Assembly (NCBI RefSeq): GCF_963506605.1
Contig: NC_083287.1
Location: 46,686,001-46,750,000 of the forward strand
From: Zootoca vivipara
Lineage: Eukaryota
Direction of reading: 5' to 3'
Length of the DNA: 64,000 nucleotides
Each line of letters opens with the position of its first letter. Position 1 is the stretch's first letter. Below are positions 3,994 to 64,000 of the stretch, one piece after another. Below the pieces are notes generated by a model. It did no database searches and was not told where the DNA came from. It saw only the letters and a list, made by a program, of their open reading frames with translations. The position numbers and the translations under genes were made by a program.

Positions 3994-4067
3994 GTGCTAA
4001 AGAGATTGATATTGCTGCTACTCTGGAGCACTTGAGAGACCAGAGACCTGGCATGGTCCAGACAAAG
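3994..4067 (+). CDS. PTPRN2: PTPRN2 (IA-2beta/phogrin) penultimate coding exon, (G)[24 protein letters not shown]
   Basis: 74-nt exon between a T-rich tract ending in CAG (3991-3993) and a GTACTG donor (4068). The translation matches the PTPRN2 C-terminal PTP domain as I recall it. [16 protein letters not shown] distinguishes it from the paralogue PTPRN (GVKE..VRDQRPGLVRSK). Confidence 0.97.
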
Positions 4068-6828: not shown

Positions 6829-6900
6829 GAACAGTTTGAGTTTGCGTTGACGGCAGTTGCAGAAGAAGTGAACGCAATCCTCAAAGCTCTTCCGCAGTGA
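6829..6900 (+). CDS. PTPRN2: PTPRN2 last coding exon, [23 protein letters not shown]
   Basis: Follows a ...ctacAG acceptor (to 6828) and joins the previous exon in phase 0. It encodes the conserved IA-2-family C-terminus and ends in TGA at 6898-6900. Confidence 0.97.
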
Positions 6901-8875: not shown

Positions 8876-9006
8876 ATCCCCAAACTTTGGCCCTCCAGAT
8901 GTTTTGGACTACAATTCCCATCATCCCTGACCACTGGTCCCGTTAGCTAGGGATCATGGGAGTTGTAGGCCAAAACATCCAGAGGGCCACAGTTTGGGGA
9001 TGCCTG
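8876..9006. mobile_element. hAT-type MITE, left terminal bases missing, in the putative PTPRN2 3' UTR
   Basis: atccccaaac...ctccagatgttttggactacaa...ccaaaacatcc...gtttggggatgcctg. Confidence 0.85.
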
Positions 9007-9040
9007 TTCTATGGCATCAGCACTTTAGAGCTTCTGTAAA

Positions 9041-27442: not shown

Positions 27443-27579
27443 CACTGTTTCCCAAACTTGAGTCTCCAACTATTTTTGGACTACAACACCCATTGTTCCC
27501 TAGCTAGCAGGGCCAGTGGTCAGGGATGATGGGAACTGTAGTTCAAAAACCGCTGGAGACCCAAGTTTGGAAAACACCG
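27443..27579. mobile_element. hAT-type MITE
   Basis: Palindromic, with TSD ctttaagg / atttaagg (7/8). Confidence 0.85.
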
Positions 27580-31872: not shown

Positions 31873-32008
31873 CAGGCATGTCAAACCTGCGGCCCTCCAG
31901 ATGTTTTGGACTACAATTCCCATCTTCCCCAACCACTGGTCCTGCTAGCTAGGGATCATGGGAGTTGTAGGCCAAAACATCTGGAGGGCCGCAGGTTTGA
32001 CATGCCTG
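31873..32008. mobile_element. hAT (Charlie-like) MITE
   Basis: Perfect 37-bp TIR caggcatgtcaaacctgcggccctccagatgttttgg; TSD ctctagcc / ctctagac. Confidence 0.95.
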
Positions 32009-34656
32009 CTCTAGACAGAGCTCAATGCAGGGGCTGCTTTCAGTTTCTGATTTTTACTGAAGGCCTGTAGGATACAGTACAATGACAGCCATGTTGGATA
32101 TTGCAAACAAGTAGCAACAGAGAAGGCAAAAAACTTTTGATCCATGGTGAGATCCACGAGATCCACATGCATCCAGGGATCAAGTAGAAGATCATGCCCT
32201 ATTTTTGTGTGTTGCTTTGTAAAATACAATATACATTCGTGTCAATGGGGATGATATATTAGTTCTACAGAAAGCCTAGACTCATGAGTTACTCGCGCTT
32301 CATCTGTGATGTCTGCAGCAGTTCCATGGGAAAACTGTTCTGAGAAAAGCAATCAATAGCTGTTGCTACAGAATTTGAGTGGGATCATATAGATTCCATG
32401 GAACTCTGCAGCTGTGTGAGAGAAACACATATAATTGTATCCAACTAAGTTCCACTGAAATTAATAGGCCTAATGTCCATTAATTTTGATGGGTCTACTC
32501 AAGAAGGACTAACATTGGATACAACCCACGAACTCTGCTTGCAAGACGGAGGGGAAGAGCATGCCAGCTCTCCTCTCACCATCTTAGCCAAATGTCTGCA
32601 GCAAGAACTCAAGTTGGTTCTATATGCAGTTTAGAACCCTGGAATGTGAGGGTTCTCGATCACATTGGGAGTTGACACAAGTCAAGCAGGCTCCCCATTT
32701 CTAAAACCATCCCTCCAACTCATGGCAGGGGGTGAGGGGTCTGACAGCAGTGCTCTCCCTCATTGCAAGAGGGATAAGAATGTCTGAATAGGGCTTATGT
32801 AGCCATGCATTCTGCACATGCTCAATGTTTCCCACGTCCAAGCTGTGGGTGAAGTTAAAACCTGGACTCCCTACCCCCAGGATTTTAGTAAAAGGTAGCA
32901 TTGGTGTGTGCCTTTGTGTTCATTGTCCGTGCAAAAAACTAGCCATGTGCATTTTCCATGGCACAATGGCTGTACAGTACCCCGTCTCCCCAAAACCAAA
33001 CAGGCAAAGCTACGAGAGAATGCTAAATTTGTGACCTAAGTAGAAGGCACAGTGCTCGTATTCAGCATGCATCTTTTATGTTTCATAGAAGCCTTTCCGC
33101 ATGTACTCTGCAACTGCTCAGCCACCTGAGACCACAGTACAGGGACAGCGAATTATCTAACAGCATTCCATCCTATAATAGCACAGGCCTCTGTGCTCTC
33201 TTAAGCACTGATGTGCATCATGATCAGAGCCTAACTTTCACCTGCAAAAAGGGAAGAAAGGAAAAGAAAAAAACCCAAACAGCGAGTTTCCATCACAGTT
33301 GCTCTATATACTAAAGCTGCTACTTCTGATCAGGAGAGAGCAAAACACTGAGCCAGTATTTGTTTTAACTCCTTTATTCTATTCCTTTGGTGCTTTTGCT
33401 GTGAGCTGCATAGCTAGCTATCCTGAACTTGTGCTCGAACTGAACTGAAGCTGAAGCTGACTGTGTGCTTCAGTCTCATAATTTCCCCACCCAGTTCCTC
33501 CACAATCAAGAGCAAAGCAGAAGGCCAGTTGAAACCGAGGCTGTGCATATCTATCCTATTGTAAAATCTCAGGAGACCGAACGCTTGTTTTCTCCAAAAA
33601 TTAGTCCACACGTTATCTAGATCTGTTGCATATCTTTTGCCTCTGAAAAATGCTTATTGAGAAACTGATTTCGGTCCAAAACAGAAAGCTCACTGCAGAC
33701 CGATACCTAGTATTATATTAAAAATATGGCAAATGGTGCAATTGGAACAATTTATAATGATGCCTTCTGTCCTGGAGTAGGTACATCTGCCCAAGAGGAC
33801 TTGCATCTAGTCACGTAAATGAGCCAGTCCCCGTTCTGCCTTCTCCTGCTTTGTTCACTTCTCCCCCACCCTCCGCCCCCAAATCTTGGACTCATTCAAA
33901 ACAAGATCCTCATCTTCATGTCTAACCTTCACCCACACTTTTTTTGCTAGCCTTGTGAATTCTGCCTAATTAAGAGCCTTTCAGATTCCCCCGTGGCCCA
34001 AGTTTTGTCATGCAGAACATGGAACTGGGGGAAAGGAAGGGTTGGAGGAAACGTGTTTTGAACATTCCCTACCCCCATCCCTCTCCCCTGGGTCCGGTTG
34101 GTGCTCTTAAAATTGGCGTTTGTGTTATATCTGGGTGAATTCTCGAAACATATTAACGGTGCTCATTAATTAAGACTCAGCGGTGATGTTCTTTAGATGA
34201 CATTTTGTACTTCAGATATCCAAGCACATAATGTATATGTGTTCTGAAGAGTGCCCACGTGTATGAATCACATCCTGGTTTGGGTTCAAAATACATCCAA
34301 GTATAATTCAGACCTTTAGAGCGCAGTTTATGATCTTAGCTCCCCCACCAACTCTATCACCCTCTTGTATTCATGTTTCCTGCTCCCTTAAACATCTTCA
34401 TCATTTTCCCCTTGGTGTCCTGGAATCGTGGAACACCCTCCTAGAACGCTAACAAAACTGTCTTTTCTCTGTGTCTCTCTCTTCCTCCAAACCCTCTCCC
34501 AAATCCATTAGACTTTTGGTTTATCTCTTAAACCACGGGCAGGAAACCTTTGTTGCGGATGGGCCTTGTTGTGCGGGGGGTGAGCAGTGAGGCCAAAATT
34601 TCACACACACACACACACAAAACCAGCCTTCACATTGCCTTTCCAAAGCAGGCTAA

Positions 34657-34807
34657 NNNNNNNNNNNNNNNNNNNNNNNNNNNNNNNNNNNNNNNNNNNN
34701 NNNNNNNNNNNNNNNNNNNNNNNNNNNNNNNNNNNNNNNNNNNNNNNNNNNNNNNNNNNNNNNNNNNNNNNNNNNNNNNNNNNNNNNNNNNNNNNNNNNN
34801 NNNNNNN
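34657..34807. other. Assembly gap
   Basis: Run of N. Confidence 1.
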
Positions 34808-41352: not shown

Positions 41353-41705
41353 TATTTTTGCAAGCACTGAAAAGCCACAATGACATCATTTTCAACAATG
41401 CCCCAATCACATAAAAAAAATTCAAAATGCAGTGTCTCTTGATTCCCAATACATGGTGGAGGACTAACAGGTGGACAAAGACCCTGTGAGCCCTTATCAT
41501 GGCAAAGAGACTTACATTGCAAGCAAGAAATGATAAACACCCACCATCCACTGTACAGTGAGGCTCTCACTGCCCTTTCTACACTGGAATTAATGACTTA
41601 TGATCGTTCATCTCATTTAGATACCTCTTTGGAGACATGGACTGCTTATATGAATCTATAGACTCTGGAAATGTTTTTCTCACTTTGCCTCCCTTGCCTT
41701 CTGTT

Positions 41706-42178
41706 GTTGTTGTTGTTTAGTCATGTCCGACTCTTCGTGACCCCATGGACCACAGCACACCAGGCACTCCTGTCTTCCACTGCCTCCCGCAGTTTGGTCA
41801 AACTCATGTTGGTAGCTTCGAGAACACTGTCCAACCATCTCATCCTCTGTCGTCCCCTTCTCCTTGTGCCCTCCATCTTTCCCAACATCAGGGTCTATTC
41901 CAGGGAGTCTTCTCTTCTCATGAGGTGGCCAAAGTATTGGCGCTGATTTGATGCTTTTGAATTATGGTGCTGGAGGAGACTCTTGAGCAGGCATCCCCCA
42001 ACTTTGGCCCTCCAGATGTTTTGGACTACAATTCCCATCATCCTCTTAGCTAGGGATCATGGGAGTTGTAGGCCAAAACATCTGGAGGGCCGCAGTTTGG
42101 GGATGCCTGCTCTTGAGAGTCCCATGGACTGCAAGAAGATCAAACCTATCCATTCTGAAGGAAATCAGCCCTGAGTGC
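41706..42178 (-). mobile_element. 5'-inverted BovB LINE insertion containing a nested hAT MITE
   Basis: 41706-41940 is a minus-strand BovB 3' end. About 41941-42178 is the upstream BovB segment in plus orientation. 11-bp TSD tgccttctgtt (41695-41705, 42176-42186). Confidence 0.9.
41988..42109. mobile_element. hAT MITE nested in BovB
   Basis: caggcatccc...gggatgcctg with perfect TSD ctcttgag (41980-41987, 42110-42117). Confidence 0.95.
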
Positions 42179-43696: not shown

Positions 43697-44277
43697 GTTT
43701 ATCTATTTTATTTCATTTATATCCCACCTTTCTTCCAATGAGCTCAAAATGGTGTACATGGTTCTCCCTTCCCTCCTAACAACCCTGGAGGTAGGTTAGG
43801 CTGAGAGGCATACCTGCCAAATCTCCCACTGAAAATGTGTGATCAGCAGCAGCGCAGCAGCGGAAGTTGCGTAGAAGCAACTTCCGGGGCTGCTCTTCCC
43901 ATGTGTGGGCACCGGAAATGGGGCAGAGCGGCACCGGAAGTTGCTTCTACGCATGCCCGTTGGTCATCTTGGTGGTGGCTGCCGGGCATGCGTAGAAGCG
44001 ACTTCCGGTGCCACTCTGCCCCATTTCCGGTGCCCACACATGGGAAGAGCGGCACCCAAAATGGAGGCTCCCTGGCAGGTAGGAAATCCGGGGGTTTTCT
44101 GGGATTTTTCTCCATTCGGGAGAACAGCGGGAAACGGATTAAAATCCGGGGGTTTCCCACGAAAAACGGGATACTTGGCAGCTAAGCTGAGAGGCGGTGA
44201 CTAGGCCCAAGGTCACCAAATGAGTTTCATGGCAGAGTGGTGTCCCAACCAGACACTCTTAACCACAACAGCACACC
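43697..44277 (-). mobile_element. Squam3/MIR-like SINE split by a DNA transposon
   Basis: tttatatcccaccttt...ggtaggttaggctgagagg | cggtgactaggcccaaggtcacc...cttaaccacaacagcacac. Confidence 0.8.
43809..44186. mobile_element. CpG-rich non-autonomous DNA transposon (CATA[C/G]CTGCCAA termini)
   Basis: TIR catacctgccaaat / acttggcagctaag, perfect 8-bp TSD ctgagagg (43801-43808, 44187-44194), and a long internal inverted repeat. Confidence 0.9.
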
Positions 44278-45409
44278 GACTGTCTTATGTTCTTATAATG
44301 ATGATACCTCGTTAACTAGGTCTGCAGTTACACAAGCACTAATTCAATCCCTGATTTGCCACCTCCACCACTTTCCTCCACCTCTATTTGCCAAGCTTCG
44401 AAACTGCATTAAAACCAGAACAAAGATTGCTTTGCTTAAATCCTTTCAACACTGCTGAGTGATAAATCTTCACACATAGAGTCCTCTAAAGGAAATGGTA
44501 AGAGACTATGCTATAATGGTACTGATGGATTTTAATACCTCATTTCCTTGCTTCTTCCACCTTAAGAGATTCTTTTCTCTCCCTTCAAGTATGATATAAT
44601 TGAAATGGAAGAAAAATTCCCATCTAATTGTGCAGATGCTCTGTTAATCACTTATTTCAATTCAATTAGTTTCAACAGGATAAGAATGTAATCTGACAGT
44701 CTAGGGAGCAATAGACATTTTGGGGTATAGCAAATTCCGCAATAGCATCTTGCTCTGTTCCCCCCACTCCCAAATCAACCAAATGAAGCTAATATGTTTG
44801 CTTAGCAATGTTTTTAAAAAAAGAAAAGAAAAAGAATAACAGGATGGCTTTTAATAAATGTAGTAGATTTAAGGATGAAAATAAAATCCCCATTATGGTG
44901 CTTCATAAATATTAGCAAGTTTTATTAAAAGCAAATACAGGTGCATTTGTGCAAATATAAGTGGTTCTCTCATCAAGGTATGTGGAATTTGCTTAGCGAT
45001 GGAGCTTGATCGGCAATATCTGTGCTGGTAACACCCAAGTACACCCACACTAACCATAACAACCCCAATATATCTTGCCAGTTGACACAAAACAAGAAAT
45101 GACTCGAAAACCTGAATCCTTTCCTTTTGCACATCTCTCCTCCTTCTATCACTTTCCCACAACCCAAATCATCCCCAAGGTGTTAAAAGATGTATGGAGA
45201 TGATCAAGTAATCTCAAAGGGCACAGTCCTAGCCCTGGCTGTTGACTGTCATATGCTCAAATCCTGTACCCATGTCTAGGGCTGTGTACCAGCTGGAAAC
45301 ACGGCTAAGCCATTCGTTTTCTCAATTTCAATCAAAGCTGGTTTGGAGGGGAAACTGCATCAAGGGCAAATGCAGGATAGATGTGGATTTCAGCTCACAT
45401 TATGCATAT

Positions 45410-45742
45410 TGTTGTTGTTGTTTAGTCGTTTAGTCGTGTCCGACTCTTCGTGACCCCATGGACCATAGCACGCCAGGCACTCCTGTCTTCCACTGCCTCC
45501 CGCAGTTTGGTCAAACTCATGTTCGTAGCTTCGAGAACAGTGTCCAACCATCTCGTCCTCTGTCGTCCCCTTCTCCTTGTGCCCTCCATCTTTCCCAACA
45601 TCAGGGTCTTTTCCAGGGAGTCTTCTCTTCTCATGAGGTGGCCAAAGTATTGGAGCCTCAGCTTCAGTATCTGTCCTTCCAGTGAGCACTCAGGGCTGAT
45701 TTCCTTCAGAATGGATAGGTTTGATCTTCTTGCAGTCCATGG
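45410..45742 (-). mobile_element. 5'-truncated BovB LINE
   Basis: BovB RT C-terminus (ORF 45422-45634); 13-bp TSD acattatgcatat (45397-45409, 45743-45755). Confidence 0.95.
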
Positions 45743-46101
45743 ACATTATGCATATACCACTTCCCAAACCAGCAGTGGGAACACAATGGATGCAGAGTAC
45801 ACAGGAACTTCCTTAACGGCCTAGGTGTTAAGGAAAAGGAGACCTGGCTCATCTATTGCTTATATGCTTCTAGACCCAATTCAAGGTGTTGGCAATGGTT
45901 TGGGGGCAAACTACCCAGGTTGCACCTGCACCGACACGAAACTGCCAGAGATTTGAGGTCGGTTACAGAGACCCTGCTCACCGGGGTCAAAGGCCCACCA
46001 GGAAAGGTTAGACTGGCTGGTACAGTCACAGCCAGTGTGGTGAGGCAGATGCTCTCACATTAAATCCCATTTTAGGGGGGGAAAACACTAAGCAGCCTTA
46101 G

Positions 46102-54995: not shown

Positions 54996-55132
54996 CAGGC
55001 TTCCTCAACCTCGGCCCTCTAGATGTTTTGAGACTACAATTCCCATCATCCCTGACCACTGGGTCCTGCTAGCTAGGGATCATGGGAGTTGTAGGCCAAA
55101 AACTTCTGGAGGGCCGAGGTTGAGGAAGCCTG
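54996..55132. mobile_element. hAT MITE
   Basis: TIR caggcttcctcaacctcggccctc; perfect TSD cataagac. Confidence 0.95.
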
Positions 55133-56291
55133 CATAAGACAATACACAAACTAACAGTATTGTCTACCTTACCCTTCCTCTTTCCCTTTTTTAACTGAGC
55201 ATCTGAAGTGTTTCTAAAATGCCATTCTGGGGTGCTGGGTTCAACCCCCCTGACAAAAGCTTGTGATCAGTGTTGTTTCAAGTCACAAAGCATGGCAAAT
55301 GCAAGCATTTTCCTATAATCTGTAAAACTGGGGAAATAGCATGTCAAGGCAGCTGGGCTGACTCAATGCTACCTGAGGCAAAGGACAATATGGTGCCTCC
55401 CTCATTACATGTACAACAGCTGCCTAGACTGTCATTTGGATGTTACTTCAACACCGGTAATGAGACAAGAGTCTTCCGCCACACTTAAGGGCAACAAGAT
55501 AGTTTACAGCGTACAAAGTAGGCACATAGCTCTGTCTACTATCCATCACTCAGCATTTGCCACTTGAGGCTGCACTGTGCCTCATGGTAGGGCCGGCCTT
55601 CCAAAGCAGAAATACAATTGCATTGCCAGAAGCAGATAAAACCTACAGTACAAGATTTCTTAACTGGTATACTGAATTATTCATCTCTAAAAGAAGCACG
55701 TGGGTCTTCTCATGAATGCCCCCCAAACAGTAGACTGACTCTAGGCATTGACAAAAGTAACGGCTTTCAAAAAATTATATCACATTGTAATTTACAAGCT
55801 GAACCAGTTGAACATTCAAATGCTACATTGCTAACATAGAACCATACCCTAGATATGACTTCTAAGAGTTTGGTGAATGAAATTTTGTTTAGTACAGTAC
55901 ATGTCTTTATACATGCTATTCTAGTTACAAGACAGCTCAGCTGGAATTCTAGGTAGTAGATTTTGATGCACAATCTCTACTGAGTCTTCAGGGCGTGACT
56001 AATTCAAATTCTGTACAAATAGTTAATTTAATAGAAACATACCCAGAAGATCAGTATGATGCTGATATTGATTACAAAAAATGTGTTTCAAGGCCCAGGC
56101 AAATGATAAAATTTTAAGATAACCAACTCACTGGGGGGGGGAGGCTGAAGGTTACAGTCATGGTGGAAGAACTACAGAGTAGGTCAATCTAGAGCTGGAA
56201 TCAACAAGCCTGGCAGAGACCAGATAACATATCTGAACCCATAATGCCATAATGTATAGAAAGGCTGGAAATAAGTTGAAATATTAAAGAG

Positions 56292-57806: not shown

Positions 57807-57943
57807 CAGGCATCCCCAAACTCGGCCCTCCAGATGTTTTGGGACTACAATTCCCATCATCCTTGACCACTGGTACTGTTGGCTAGGGATGATGGGAGTT
57901 GGTAGTCCCAAAACATCTGGAGGGCAGAGTTTGGGGGTGCCTG
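57807..57943. mobile_element. hAT MITE
   Basis: caggcatccccaaactc...gagtttgggggtgcctg; TSD ccatacaa / ccatacgt. Confidence 0.9.
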
Positions 57944-58159
57944 CCATACGTCGTCTTCAATCAGGAATTTCAAACACCTCAGTTAGTGGGAAGACGTACC
58001 AACAGAGAACCAAAACTAAATTCGAAATCAGTTTGAAGTAAGAGTTGCATACCGTGTTTCCCCTTTTTTAATACGTAGTCAGAGAGTAAGCCATGGCAGC
58101 ATTTTTTAGCATTAGTGAAACATAAGACACCCCCCGAAAATAAGGCATACCTCCATGCC

Positions 58160-59290
58160 GTGTAGAACGAGACCGTCGAGCGCCCCAGCCAGCCAGCGGG
58201 ACCCAGCCAGCCAGAGGGGCCTGGAACCGGCTGCTGCTGCAGCAGCGAGCGCCTGGAGCGCCCGCGCCAGCAGCCTGGCCTCTCTTTTTTTTGCCTGCCC
58301 GAGGCAGCCTGCCGCCCCGCCACCGGAACCGGCGGCTGCAGAGCAGAGCGCTCCGCAGCGCCGGGCAGAGCGCAGCGGCCTGGCCTCTTTATTATTATTT
58401 ATTTGCCGGCCGCCCCGCCACCGGAACCGGCGGCTGCAGAGCGGAGCGCGGCCAGCGGGGAGGGCTGCGCGTTCCCGTGCGGTGATGGCGGTGCGTGGAC
58501 GCGCGGCGGTGGTAGCAGCAGCAGCAATGGCTGCTGTGGATCGGCGGCTGCCGAATCTCGATGACTTCGCGGGGCAGAGCTGGAGCGCCTGGGTGGAGAG
58601 GGCCGGGCCGACCGCAGCCGAGACAGGTGAGCGCGCCCGCCCTGCCCGCGGGCCCGGAGGTGGCGGCAGGCGGCGGCGGGAAGCAGGGGACCCTCCGTCG
58701 CCGTTTCTGCTGCTGCCGCCGCCGCCATCGAGCTTCCTCCCTCCCTCCCTCGCCTCCCCTCCTCCTCCCTCGCCCCCTCCCTCACCCCGCCCGCCCCAAA
58801 CAAAGGAGCCGCCGGGTCCTAGCGCCGCCTCACTTCCCGCCCGATGGATCCTGCCTTCCTTTTCCTGCCGCTTCGATCGGGTTCCCTAGGATCTCTCGAT
58901 CCTCCTGATGGGATCCCCTCTCCCCCAGCCTGATTTCACCGGGGGGATGCTGTGATCAAGTCAGGATCTTTGTCCCACGCGTTTTCCAGCTCCTTATGTG
59001 CTTCTCGTTCCTACTTTGATCCCTTATTACAGGAGCATGGGTTTTTTTTTACAGGAGCACAGCGGCCTGGCCTCTTTAATTTTTTTTTTTTGCCGGCCGC
59101 CCCGCCACCGGAACCGGCGGCTGCAGAGCGGAGCGCTCCGCAGCGCCGAGCGCTCGAAACGCCCAGCAGCACCAGGCGGAGCACTGAGCCAGCAGCCTGC
59201 TGCCTTGGTGCTTGGAACCGGCTGCTGCAGCAGCACCGCACAGAGCGCCCAGCAGCACCCCGAGCCAGCTGCCTGGCCCCTCTGAGGAGG
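58160..59290. promoter_or_regulatory. CpG island wholly contained in the TIR element
   Basis: Very GC- and CpG-rich against a CpG-depleted background. Confidence 0.8.
58485..58626 (+). pseudogene. ATXN7L2: Transposon-borne copy of ATXN7L2 coding exon 1 (MAVRGRAAVVAAAAMAAVDRRLPNLDDFAGQSWSAWVERAGPTAAET-G)
   Basis: Closely resembles the human ATXN7L2 N-terminus as I recall it (MAVRERAAAAMAALERRVPSLDDFAGQSWSSWVERA). ATG is in good context (gtgATGG) and the exon ends at a phase-1 AG|GTGAGC donor. No further ATXN7L2 exon was recognised in the window. Confidence 0.88.
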
Positions 59291-59447
59291 CCTTAAGGTA
59301 CAAGACATCCCCTGAAAATAAGACACCGTGGGTTTTTTTGAGTAAAAAAAAGAATAAGACGGTGTCTTAAAAAGGGGGAAACACGGTAGTATTAGATCAG
59401 TTTTACTTGTTTCACGCATAAGTCTCTTGAGGCATCCTTTCATATGA

Positions 59448-61769: not shown

Positions 61770-62550
61770 TGTTAAGGGTTTGTGAGAAACGGCAGCTTTG
61801 AAGAAGCAATTAGTTAGCTGGCAAGAAGCCAAGTTAACAGGAGTACATGACCAAAGTCTGCCTAGAAACTGGGAAGCCTAGCAACAGGCTGTGATTGGTT
61901 GAAGGTTCCCTGATAAGTAGTATGACACAGCAAGTCTCTGTTTGGAGTTAGTTGGTCTATGTTAGATGAGAGAGTATAGTAACTGTCATAGCTGCCAAGT
62001 ATCCCGTTTTCGCCGGGAAACCCCCTTTTTTCCTACCGTTTCCCGGCGGTCTCCCGTATAGGTTTTTATCCCATTATTCTCCCTTAAATCCGCTTCTGCC
62101 GGCAGCCATTTTTCTGGTGCCGCTTTGCCCTTCTATGGGCACCAGAAAATGGCGCCGCCGGCACCGGAAGTTGCTTCTACGCATGTCCGGAAACGCGTAG
62201 ACGCAACTTCCAGTGGCGCTTTGCCCTTCTATGGGCACCAGAAAATGGTGGCGCCGGAAGTCGCTTTTACGCGTTTCCGGTCATGCGTAGAAGTGACTTC
62301 CGGCGCTGGCACCGCCATTTTCTGGTGCCCATAGAAGAGCAAAGTGCCACCGGAAGTTGCGTCTACGCAACTTCTGGTGTCGCGGGCTGCCGGTCCCGGA
62401 TTTTTCCATCCAGGACTTGGCAGGTATGGTAACTGTGTATATCGAAAGCTGCGCTTTACCCTGCTGTATATAATAAATGCAACTACAACTCAAGTTACTG
62501 TTCTGCAAGTTCTGTTCCTGAATCGGTATCCTGGACTGCAACGTCTCGCA
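61770..62550 (+). mobile_element. LTR (about 331 bp after removing the nested element) followed by a tRNA-iMet PBS
   Basis: TG start, reverse CCAAT near 61894, AATAAA at 62472-62477, CA end, then a 2-nt spacer and TGGTAGCAGAGG (62553-62564), complementary to the tRNA-iMet 3' end. Confidence 0.75.
61987..62428. mobile_element. CpG-rich non-autonomous DNA transposon (same family as 43809-44186, opposite orientation)
   Basis: TIR catagctgccaagt / acttggcaggtatg (13/14); perfect TSD gtaactgt (61979-61986, 62429-62436). Confidence 0.92.
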
Positions 62551-62577: not shown

Positions 62578-62715
62578 CAGGCACCCCCAAACTGCGGCCC
62601 TCCAGATGTTTTGGGACTACAACTCCCATGATCCCTAGCTAACAGGACCAGTGGTCAGGGATGATGGGAATTGTAGTCCAAAACATCTGGAGGGCCGAAA
62701 GTTTGGGGGTGCCTG
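62578..62715. mobile_element. hAT MITE
   Basis: TIR caggcacccccaaact; perfect TSD gtctagat (62570-62577, 62716-62723). Confidence 0.95.
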
Positions 62716-64000
62716 GTCTAGATCCATCAACAAAACAGTTCCTGGAAACCACAGGGAGGGAAAGTGATCTGGCACTCGGGTCCTGTTTGTGGGTATCCAA
62801 GAGGCAATTTTTGTGAACCGCCCCGAGATCTTCAGATGAAGGGTGGTATACAAATTTAATAAATCATTATCATCCTCAACTCTTTGGCCAAAGTGCGGAT
62901 AGGAAGCTGAACTAGATGTGCCCATGGCCTGATCCAGCAGGCTCTTCCTATGTTCTCAGTAATCCCCACTGATTTCAAATGACTTCCCTCCCAGTTTAAG
63001 CAGCATTCCCCACACCCCCAAACTTGAAGCCAATACCACAGTTTATGTCTGGTGCAACAGAGATGCCACTTTATTTGCCAAGCAATAGGCATTCTGTATG
63101 CTTTATAACAGCCACTGAATTAGCACTTCTAGCCCGTGGAAAAGCTACAGATACTCTAGATCAAAGCGCATGCTGTGAACATCCTGGGGTCACATTTGGG
63201 CAACAATTTTGTTGACAAAGGCAACAGAGGAAGCGGGAATTCTGTTAACTAGTCCGCAACCTAGTCTTGGACCCCCTGCTGAGAATAATATTACCATATA
63301 CAGAATAGCATTTATTTCTAACGGCTCCTCTTCTGAGCTCTGTACACCATATGCTGCCTTTTTGCAGCAGCAATAATAATAATGATAATAAGAATGATAA
63401 TAATAAAAAATTAAAAAGAAAATACCCCAGCGGTCTCCGCGTTCAGTGCAAATCCTACAAGGTTTTCCTGAACAAATAGCAGATAGTGACCTTTTGGCCT
63501 TTGTTTTGCATGAGAATTAACATCAGTATTCAGTAGTTACTACTGTGACTAGGGACTACTGCAAATGCCAGATTCTGATTTAAAACTCTGGTGTGTGTTT
63601 TTTAAGAACCCAGAAGAAAAGGGGGTCCTTTGAAGCTCATCTGCATTACAGATCAGGCCTCTCTGAGAAAATCAACCATCCATAATTCATTACATGTTTC
63701 CTGCAGGGCTTGGAGACAGCAGCGATCCTAGCAACAGCAGAGTCATAGCAACAGCTGCAAAGCCGGCCAATCCAGCGTCATCCTTCCTTATGCAACGTAA
63801 CCAATCAAGACTGGGGAGCACCAGGCTGAAATGTTGTCAGCCAACTGGTTATTCTGTCATAAGCCTAGTTTTTAAACTAATGTGTGCTATTGGAATTTTC
63901 ACTAGCATGCTGAAGGGGGAAAAGGTCTGAAGCCATTTTTTTGCTGAAATGTAGAATGAAATGAAATGCAAAATTGTGGACTTGAAAAAATACTCCGTTC

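Follow-up and report, generated by a model that had tools for sequence, protein, structure and literature searches.

How did the first coding exon of ATXN7L2, a gene that in amniotes belongs to the SYPL2/CYB561D1 block, come to lie between the two ends of a DNA transposon downstream of PTPRN2? The question is raised by a 64-kb stretch of DNA from the lizard Zootoca vivipara, which is called the window here. The exon sits close to the end of the window, together with its splice donor and the beginning of its intron, inside a short element that has a copy of the same dinucleotide on either side. The element is probably a Pack-TIR, in which the 5' end of ATXN7L2 was copied by template switching into an internal break of a resident non-autonomous transposon, in situ and as a single copy.

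Ends and target site of the element

The element extends from 58052 to 59386 (1,335 bp) and is recognised by the TA on both sides, by 23-nt terminal inverted repeats (TIRs) and by subterminal ATAAGRC motifs. Its outer parts are as follows:

58050-58051, no strand: left TA, putative first copy of a 2-bp target site duplication (TSD), read directly from the letters and the same as the TA at 59387-59388
58052-58074, + strand: left TIR, from the repeat search and an end-to-end alignment
58075-58150, + strand: left subterminal AT-rich region with ATAAGRC twice (58122 and 58140), from motif enrichment and a direct repeat
59295-59363, + strand: right subterminal AT-rich region with ATAAGRC twice (59318 and 59354), from motif enrichment and a direct repeat
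59364-59386, - strand: right TIR, from the repeat search and an end-to-end alignment
59387-59388, no strand: right TA, putative second copy of the TSD, read directly from the letters

In the repeat search the arms 58050-58074 and 59364-59388, each 25 nt long including the TA, are 92% complementary, and when the TA is left aside the match is 19 of 20, exactly as the earlier note had described it for a TA-flanked element with 20-bp TIRs. Scanning the 64 kb with a 19-mer of the left TIR and allowing up to three mismatches gives two sites, which are the two TIRs themselves, against 0.05 expected from shuffled sequence. The TA stands directly outside both TIRs and cannot be extended to a longer duplication. 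The subterminal repeats that had been noticed at both ends are also real: the motif ATAAGRCR has 11 matches in the window, four of which fall into two subterminal stretches of about 100 bp, all four on the + strand (58122, 58140, 59318 and 59354), and the two stretches have a 24-nt direct repeat in common (58124-58147 and 59302-59325).

The window contains one copy of this TIR element according to both the 19-mer scan and self-BLAST, and the repeat family to which it would belong is a putative one, proposed from anatomy alone. BLAST of the flanks against the window, singly and joined, gave no uninterrupted copy that could serve as a paralogous empty site, and a full-text literature search with the TIR string returned unrelated papers only. 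Scans of metagenome and prokaryote contigs for the exact TIR and repeat unit were empty, as is natural for collections in which lizard DNA would not be sought. Apart from open reading frames (ORFs) that arise by chance in GC-rich sequence, the element encodes nothing, and Pfam finds no transposase domain in the window, where the 450 longest stop-free segments were scanned. Its composition sets it apart from its surroundings, as the observed/expected ratio of CpG is 0.7-0.94 across the element versus 0.06-0.27 in the flanks, with a sharp change at the TIRs. There are no runs of N in or near it.

Identity of the enclosed sequence

Three adjoining pieces in the middle of the element are of host origin:

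58450-58484, + strand: captured 5' leader of ATXN7L2, 35 bp 5' of the ATG, from a translation match to squamate leaders
58485-58626, + strand: coding exon 1 of ATXN7L2, with the ATG, 47 codons and base 1 of codon 48, from translation, phmmer and alignment
58627-59054, + strand: captured 5' part of intron 1 from the GTGAGC donor, from the letters and from tblastn of intron read-through ORFs

The letters and the translation agree with an ATG-initiated exon of 47 codons followed by a GTGAGC donor, which lies at 58627 directly 3' of the exon, and the Kozak-like context of the start codon is intact. When the 47-aa peptide was compared by phmmer with 1.84 billion representative proteins, 46 matches were found. 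The best full-length one is P0003, an ataxin-7-like protein 2 of Elgaria with 782 aa that is 91% identical at the N-terminus; full-length proteins of this type carry an SCA7 domain at about residues 260-330. The protein searches also gave fragments named as human (P0007 and P0048) and an ORF from JGI that may be mammalian (P0051). Annotated squamate orthologues were then gathered by a search with P0003, and their N-termini were aligned to the peptide from the window, with the following number of identical residues:

Zootoca vivipara ATXN7L2, isoforms X1 and X2: 47 of 47, including Thr43
Podarcis (four species) and Lacerta agilis ATXN7L2: 46 of 47 (Pro43)
Pogona ATXN7L2: 44 of 47
Elgaria ATXN7L2: 43 of 47

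The identification of the peptide as the N-terminus of ATXN7L2, which the earlier note had made, therefore stands with a complete match to Zootoca vivipara. In all aligned orthologues residue 48 onward (…SDVEENG…) belongs to exon 2, and this exon boundary agrees with the donor in the window. The translation of the leader, PAGRAARSRAV, is in frame and matches Rhineura P0069, Ahaetulla P0068 and P0004.

Behind the donor, the earlier note had seen about 400 bp of intron-like sequence. The segment measures 428 bp and is genuine intron 1 sequence of ATXN7L2, because squamate read-through ORFs, namely P0001 (Varanus), P0002 and P0004 (Logan assemblies), keep matching the translation of the window in tblastn until about 58848. 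These comparisons support a cargo in which ATXN7L2 exon 1 and its donor are followed by a part of intron 1. A processed retrocopy is ruled out, as had been argued before, since the donor still precedes 428 bp of intron and no poly(A) is present. Nor is this a functional copy of the gene, which would encode a protein of about 780 aa with a zinc-binding SCA7 domain: when the window was searched by tblastn with ATXN7L2 of Elgaria, Zootoca, Podarcis and others, exon 1 (residues 1-47) was the only part to be found, even with the E-value limit raised to 100, and neither the SCA7 domain nor any other part of the protein is there. The true ATXN7L2 gene should thus be located elsewhere in the same genome.

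The copy is probably young, since its peptide equals the Zootoca protein including the Zootoca-specific Thr43 and since its CpGs are undecayed. Most likely it is also inert, because it came without a native promoter (the leader is only 35 bp long) and because its donor faces 4.6 kb of DNA that is rich in transposable elements (TEs) and has no recognisable exon. The GC-rich core with its undecayed CpGs could act as a cryptic promoter.

It is worth noting that an in-frame ATG at 58155, inside the element, opens an ORF of 244 aa (58155-58889, + strand) that runs through the exon into the intron. The exact sequence of this ORF has no match in the protein collection. It is probably a by-product of GC-richness, and it was given no weight because stop codons are rare in such GC-rich sequence.

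Tandem units and breakpoints

The limits of the cargo can be read from a repeat that belongs to the transposon itself. On either side of the cargo lies a GC-rich part of the element:

58151-58449, + strand: left internal GC-rich part with tandem units of about 98 bp (unit 1 at 58270-58367, unit 2 at 58368-58449), from repeats, self-BLAST and a three-unit alignment
59055-59294, + strand: right internal GC-rich part including unit 3 (59055-59151), from repeats, self-BLAST and a three-unit alignment

The cargo is directly flanked by a direct repeat of 82 nt, 58368-58449 and 59055-59136, whose copies are 94% identical and differ at 5 of the 82 positions. A third, more diverged copy was found at 58270-58351 by the repeat search and by self-BLAST, and the three align as successive units of about 98 bp in a GC-rich tandem array. 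Because unit 2 stops at unit position 82 and unit 3 restarts at position 1, the cargo can be set to 58450-59054, a length of 605 bp to which the leader contributes 35 bp, the exon 142 bp and the intron 428 bp. A larger cargo that would include the GC-rich repeats is ruled out, as these are direct copies of each other on both sides.

The left breakpoint is at 58449/58450, with placement limits of 58431-58460. It lies 2 nt beyond the centre of a 14-nt palindrome of the unit, GCGGAGCGCTCCGC. An intact unit could form a hairpin of about 34 nt; its folding is no better than that of shuffled sequences of the same composition (z = -1.15), and a role of the hairpin at this breakpoint is only suggestive. 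The right breakpoint is at about 59054/59055, where ACAGGAGCA occurs twice, 22 nt apart, in a 9-nt duplication that looks like a footprint of slippage. Taken together, the palindrome at the left break and the duplication at the right junction appear typical of template switching in animal Pack-TIRs (PMC8277862). Comparison with other squamates places the left boundary at nearly the same point, as the similarity to their in-frame leaders, PAG(R/W)AARSR, goes back only to about 36 nt 5' of the ATG. Upstream of about -36 the window has the element unit, and P0004 and Rhineura P0069 have a different motif in common. This argument for the boundary is only a moderate one, because Salvator and Ahaetulla lack the motif of P0004 and Rhineura and thus also differ there.

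Genomic neighbourhood

The start of the window falls inside the 3' end of PTPRN2. Two of its exons were found by motif search of the six-frame translation, and each was compared separately and not as part of a joined model:

3996-4067, + strand: penultimate coding exon of PTPRN2, with 24 of 24 residues equal to PDB 2qep (PTPRN2) versus 19 of 23 to 2i1y (PTPRN)
6829-6900 (coding to 6897), + strand: last coding exon of PTPRN2 with the stop, starting with EQFEF as in PTPRN2 and ending in ...KALPQ before the stop

These exons (3996-4067 and 6829-6897) confirm that the site is downstream of PTPRN2, and the element follows the stop codon after about 51 kb, on the same strand. In the roughly 57 kb beyond the PTPRN2 exons, the captured exon is the only recognisable coding exon. 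Pfam gave nothing for the 450 longest stop-free segments (at least 54 aa) except one weak Y_phosphatase match, which is the PTPRN2 exon, and no synaptophysin-type, cytochrome b561 or DnaJ domain was detected among those segments. The window continues for 4.6 kb past the element and 5.4 kb past the exon.

How the exon came to lie inside the transposon

A systematic account of such elements was given by Tan et al. (2021, Nat Commun 12:4280; PMC8277862), who described 370 Pack-TIRs in 100 animal genomes. The locus has two hallmarks of a Pack-TIR: both TIRs of one DNA transposon are present with a TSD, and the segment between them is host sequence, here the leader, exon 1 and the start of intron 1 of ATXN7L2 between 82-nt units of the element. 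Single-copy animal Pack-TIRs mostly arise by gap filling that is independent of transposition and leaves microhomology at internal breakpoints (PMC8277862). Applied to the lizard, the starting state would be a TA-duplicating, non-autonomous TIR element in the gene-poor stretch downstream of PTPRN2. Free of cargo, it would have measured about 730 bp, with AT-rich ends carrying ATAAGRC and a GC-rich core of tandem units of about 98 bp. A break in this core, within the tandem array, may have been followed by repair synthesis in which, after a template switch, 605 bp were copied from the 5' end of ATXN7L2 before synthesis returned to the next repeat unit of the element. Copying most likely took place in this way, in situ by gap filling and not before a transposition, and the loaded element is therefore expected to be single-copy.

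The same anatomy could come about in a different order, the one that the earlier note had in mind, with the capture at or near the parental ATXN7L2 locus and a later move of the loaded element to its present site, perhaps as one of several copies. This is rather unlikely. Both TIRs and the TA duplication are intact, and a transposase could formally still act on the loaded element; however, intact ends are equally to be expected if a resident element was filled in place. The cargo is GC-rich, as it is in multicopy Pack-TIRs (PMC8277862), the undecayed CpGs suggest youth, and the window holds other MITE families that look young. Against this stand the absence of a second copy in the 64-kb window and the rarity of the outcome, since multicopy Pack-TIRs number only four in the survey of 100 genomes, three from frog and one from alligator (PMC8277862). 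Protein collections contain no chimeric ORF that joins element and exon, which is a weak point, as seven ORFs of the window are likewise absent there. In that search the 244-aa query was swamped by low-complexity words and gave P0004 alone, and a query with the exon region gave P0001, P0002 and P0004 as the only squamate matches, none of them chimeric. In-place filling of a resident element fits the anatomy equally well or better, with the cargo between the element's own units. Both readings are compatible with the data, and in-place capture is favoured because the breakpoints are internal, embedded in repeats and in line with the gap-filling model.

It is also conceivable that no capture occurred, and that this is the native and only exon 1 of ATXN7L2, with the remainder of the gene past position 64000 and transposon ends that bracket the exon by chance. 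The full match to the annotated Zootoca protein, including the lineage-specific Thr43, is what a native exon would give, and a very young copy predicts the same. The start codon, its Kozak-like context, the donor and the CpG-island-like composition are all intact, and the window ends 5.4 kb past the exon, so that a long native intron 1 is compatible with the distance. Chance, however, would have to bring together two half-elements that are oriented alike, have complementary ends and are each bordered by a TA, and also to place the same 82-nt unit of the element right before and right after the exon block. Sequence 5' of -36 is element unit where P0004 and Rhineura have another motif in common, and the limits of the CpG island coincide exactly with the TIRs. 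On the upstream side the neighbouring gene is PTPRN2, across 51 kb of TE-rich DNA with no other recognisable exon, and tblastn finds no exon 2 in the window. A native exon is for these reasons very unlikely. A misassembly, in which reads from the CpG island of ATXN7L2 were misjoined into the GC-rich repeat of the transposon, is scarcely credible. It is true that GC-rich tandem repeats are hard to assemble, that the junctions lie inside such repeats and that the window has gaps elsewhere (14539-14797 and 34657-34807). Yet the element and its immediate surroundings are free of N runs, each junction is marked by microhomology or a short duplication and not by a blunt fusion of unrelated sequences, and the flanking units are unlike at 5 of 82 positions, which is what true paralogous units would show.

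Comparison with known elements

Like the Pack-TIRs of other animals, the lizard element is a TIR transposon with intact ends and TSD whose interior holds a few hundred base pairs of host sequence. Its breakpoints are internal and not terminal, and the junctions show short stretches that are homologous or duplicated; it appears to be single-copy, and exonic cargo of this kind can supply a new first exon or splice site. It differs in that its cargo is a start-codon exon with an intact donor, placed between two units of a tandem array. The published definition also requires a parental copy and an element consensus (PMC8277862); the lizard element is classed from its anatomy and cargo. The earlier note had called such captures uncommon in amniotes, which overstates the case: alligator has 38 Pack-TIRs and human has 12, although there are 0 for Anolis (anoCar2), the sole lizard in the survey, whose TIR elements were barely annotated (PMC8277862).

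The Pack-MULEs and Pack-CACTA elements of plants are also non-autonomous and carry gene fragments, introns included, between their TIRs, with a preference for the GC-rich 5' ends of genes. They belong to other superfamilies, with TSDs of 9-11 bp or 3 bp and long TIRs, and are often multicopy and mobile, with thousands per genome. The lizard element, in contrast, has a 2-bp TA TSD, 23-nt TIRs and no sign of mobility after the capture. Closer in structure are the vertebrate MITEs of the Tc1/mariner-pogo type, with which it shares the TA TSD, short TIRs, the lack of coding capacity and a length below 1 kb once the cargo is subtracted. The placement in this superfamily, which the earlier note had labelled Tc2/pogo, is putative, as it is taken from the TA and the TIRs alone. 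The TIRs of Tc1 and Tigger start with CAGT or CAGG, whereas the lizard TIR starts with CCGTG; its subterminal motifs also differ in being direct and not inverted.

Meaning of the probable capture

The element is a clear but unexceptional case of a process that is already known, the capture of gene fragments by DNA transposons, and the current view of the origin of such captures is left unchanged by it. It is possibly the first Pack-TIR to be described in a squamate, and a literature search found no paper linking Pack-TIRs with squamates. If confirmed, it would add a squamate case to the animal catalogue, whose single lizard genome gave none. The case is unusually legible, as the breakpoints can be read to a few bases and the cargo is a complete module of start codon and splice donor. 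A break within one of the element's tandem repeats, which contain a palindrome, also fits the model of gap filling at fragile sites.

For genome annotation the consequences are practical ones. An exon at a second locus that is identical to the true exon 1 of ATXN7L2 can mislead gene predictors and the mapping of reads. Present or recent mobility of the loaded element in lacertid lizards, which would spread a portable first exon or promoter in several copies, is quite unlikely. If it did occur, the start exon of ATXN7L2 with its donor and the CpG-island-like core could be spliced to downstream host exons and lead to chimeric N-termini.

Other repeats in the window

Several other repeats were seen in the window. 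A palindromic MITE family of about 137 bp, with ends that read CAGGCA.CCCCAAACT..., has at least seven copies of 78-92% identity, one of which precedes the Pack-TIR element by no more than about 100 bp:

57807-57943: copy of the MITE of about 137 bp
62578-62715: copy of the same MITE
54996-55133: copy of the same MITE
8876-9013: copy of the same MITE
31873-32009: copy of the same MITE
41987-42110: copy of the same MITE
27451-27570: copy of the same MITE

A CpG-rich element of about 440 bp is found in two diverged copies (61987-62428 and 43809-44184), with a CpG observed/expected ratio of up to 1.09. It has 14-nt TIRs (CATAGCTGCCAAGT) and a long internal palindrome with arms of about 100 nt, and looks like another young non-autonomous DNA transposon. 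The two assembly gaps of the window are runs of 259 N (14539-14797) and 151 N (34657-34807). A further repeat family occurs on both strands at about 21700-22060, 23420-23940, 41670-41950 and 45390-45820; it translates to ...TPWTIARQALLS.TASRSLVKLMFVASRTLSNHLVLCRPLLLVPSIFPNIRVFS... on one strand and to ...AMVHGVTKSRTRLND on the other, and presumably resembles tails of the BovB or Sauria-SINE type.
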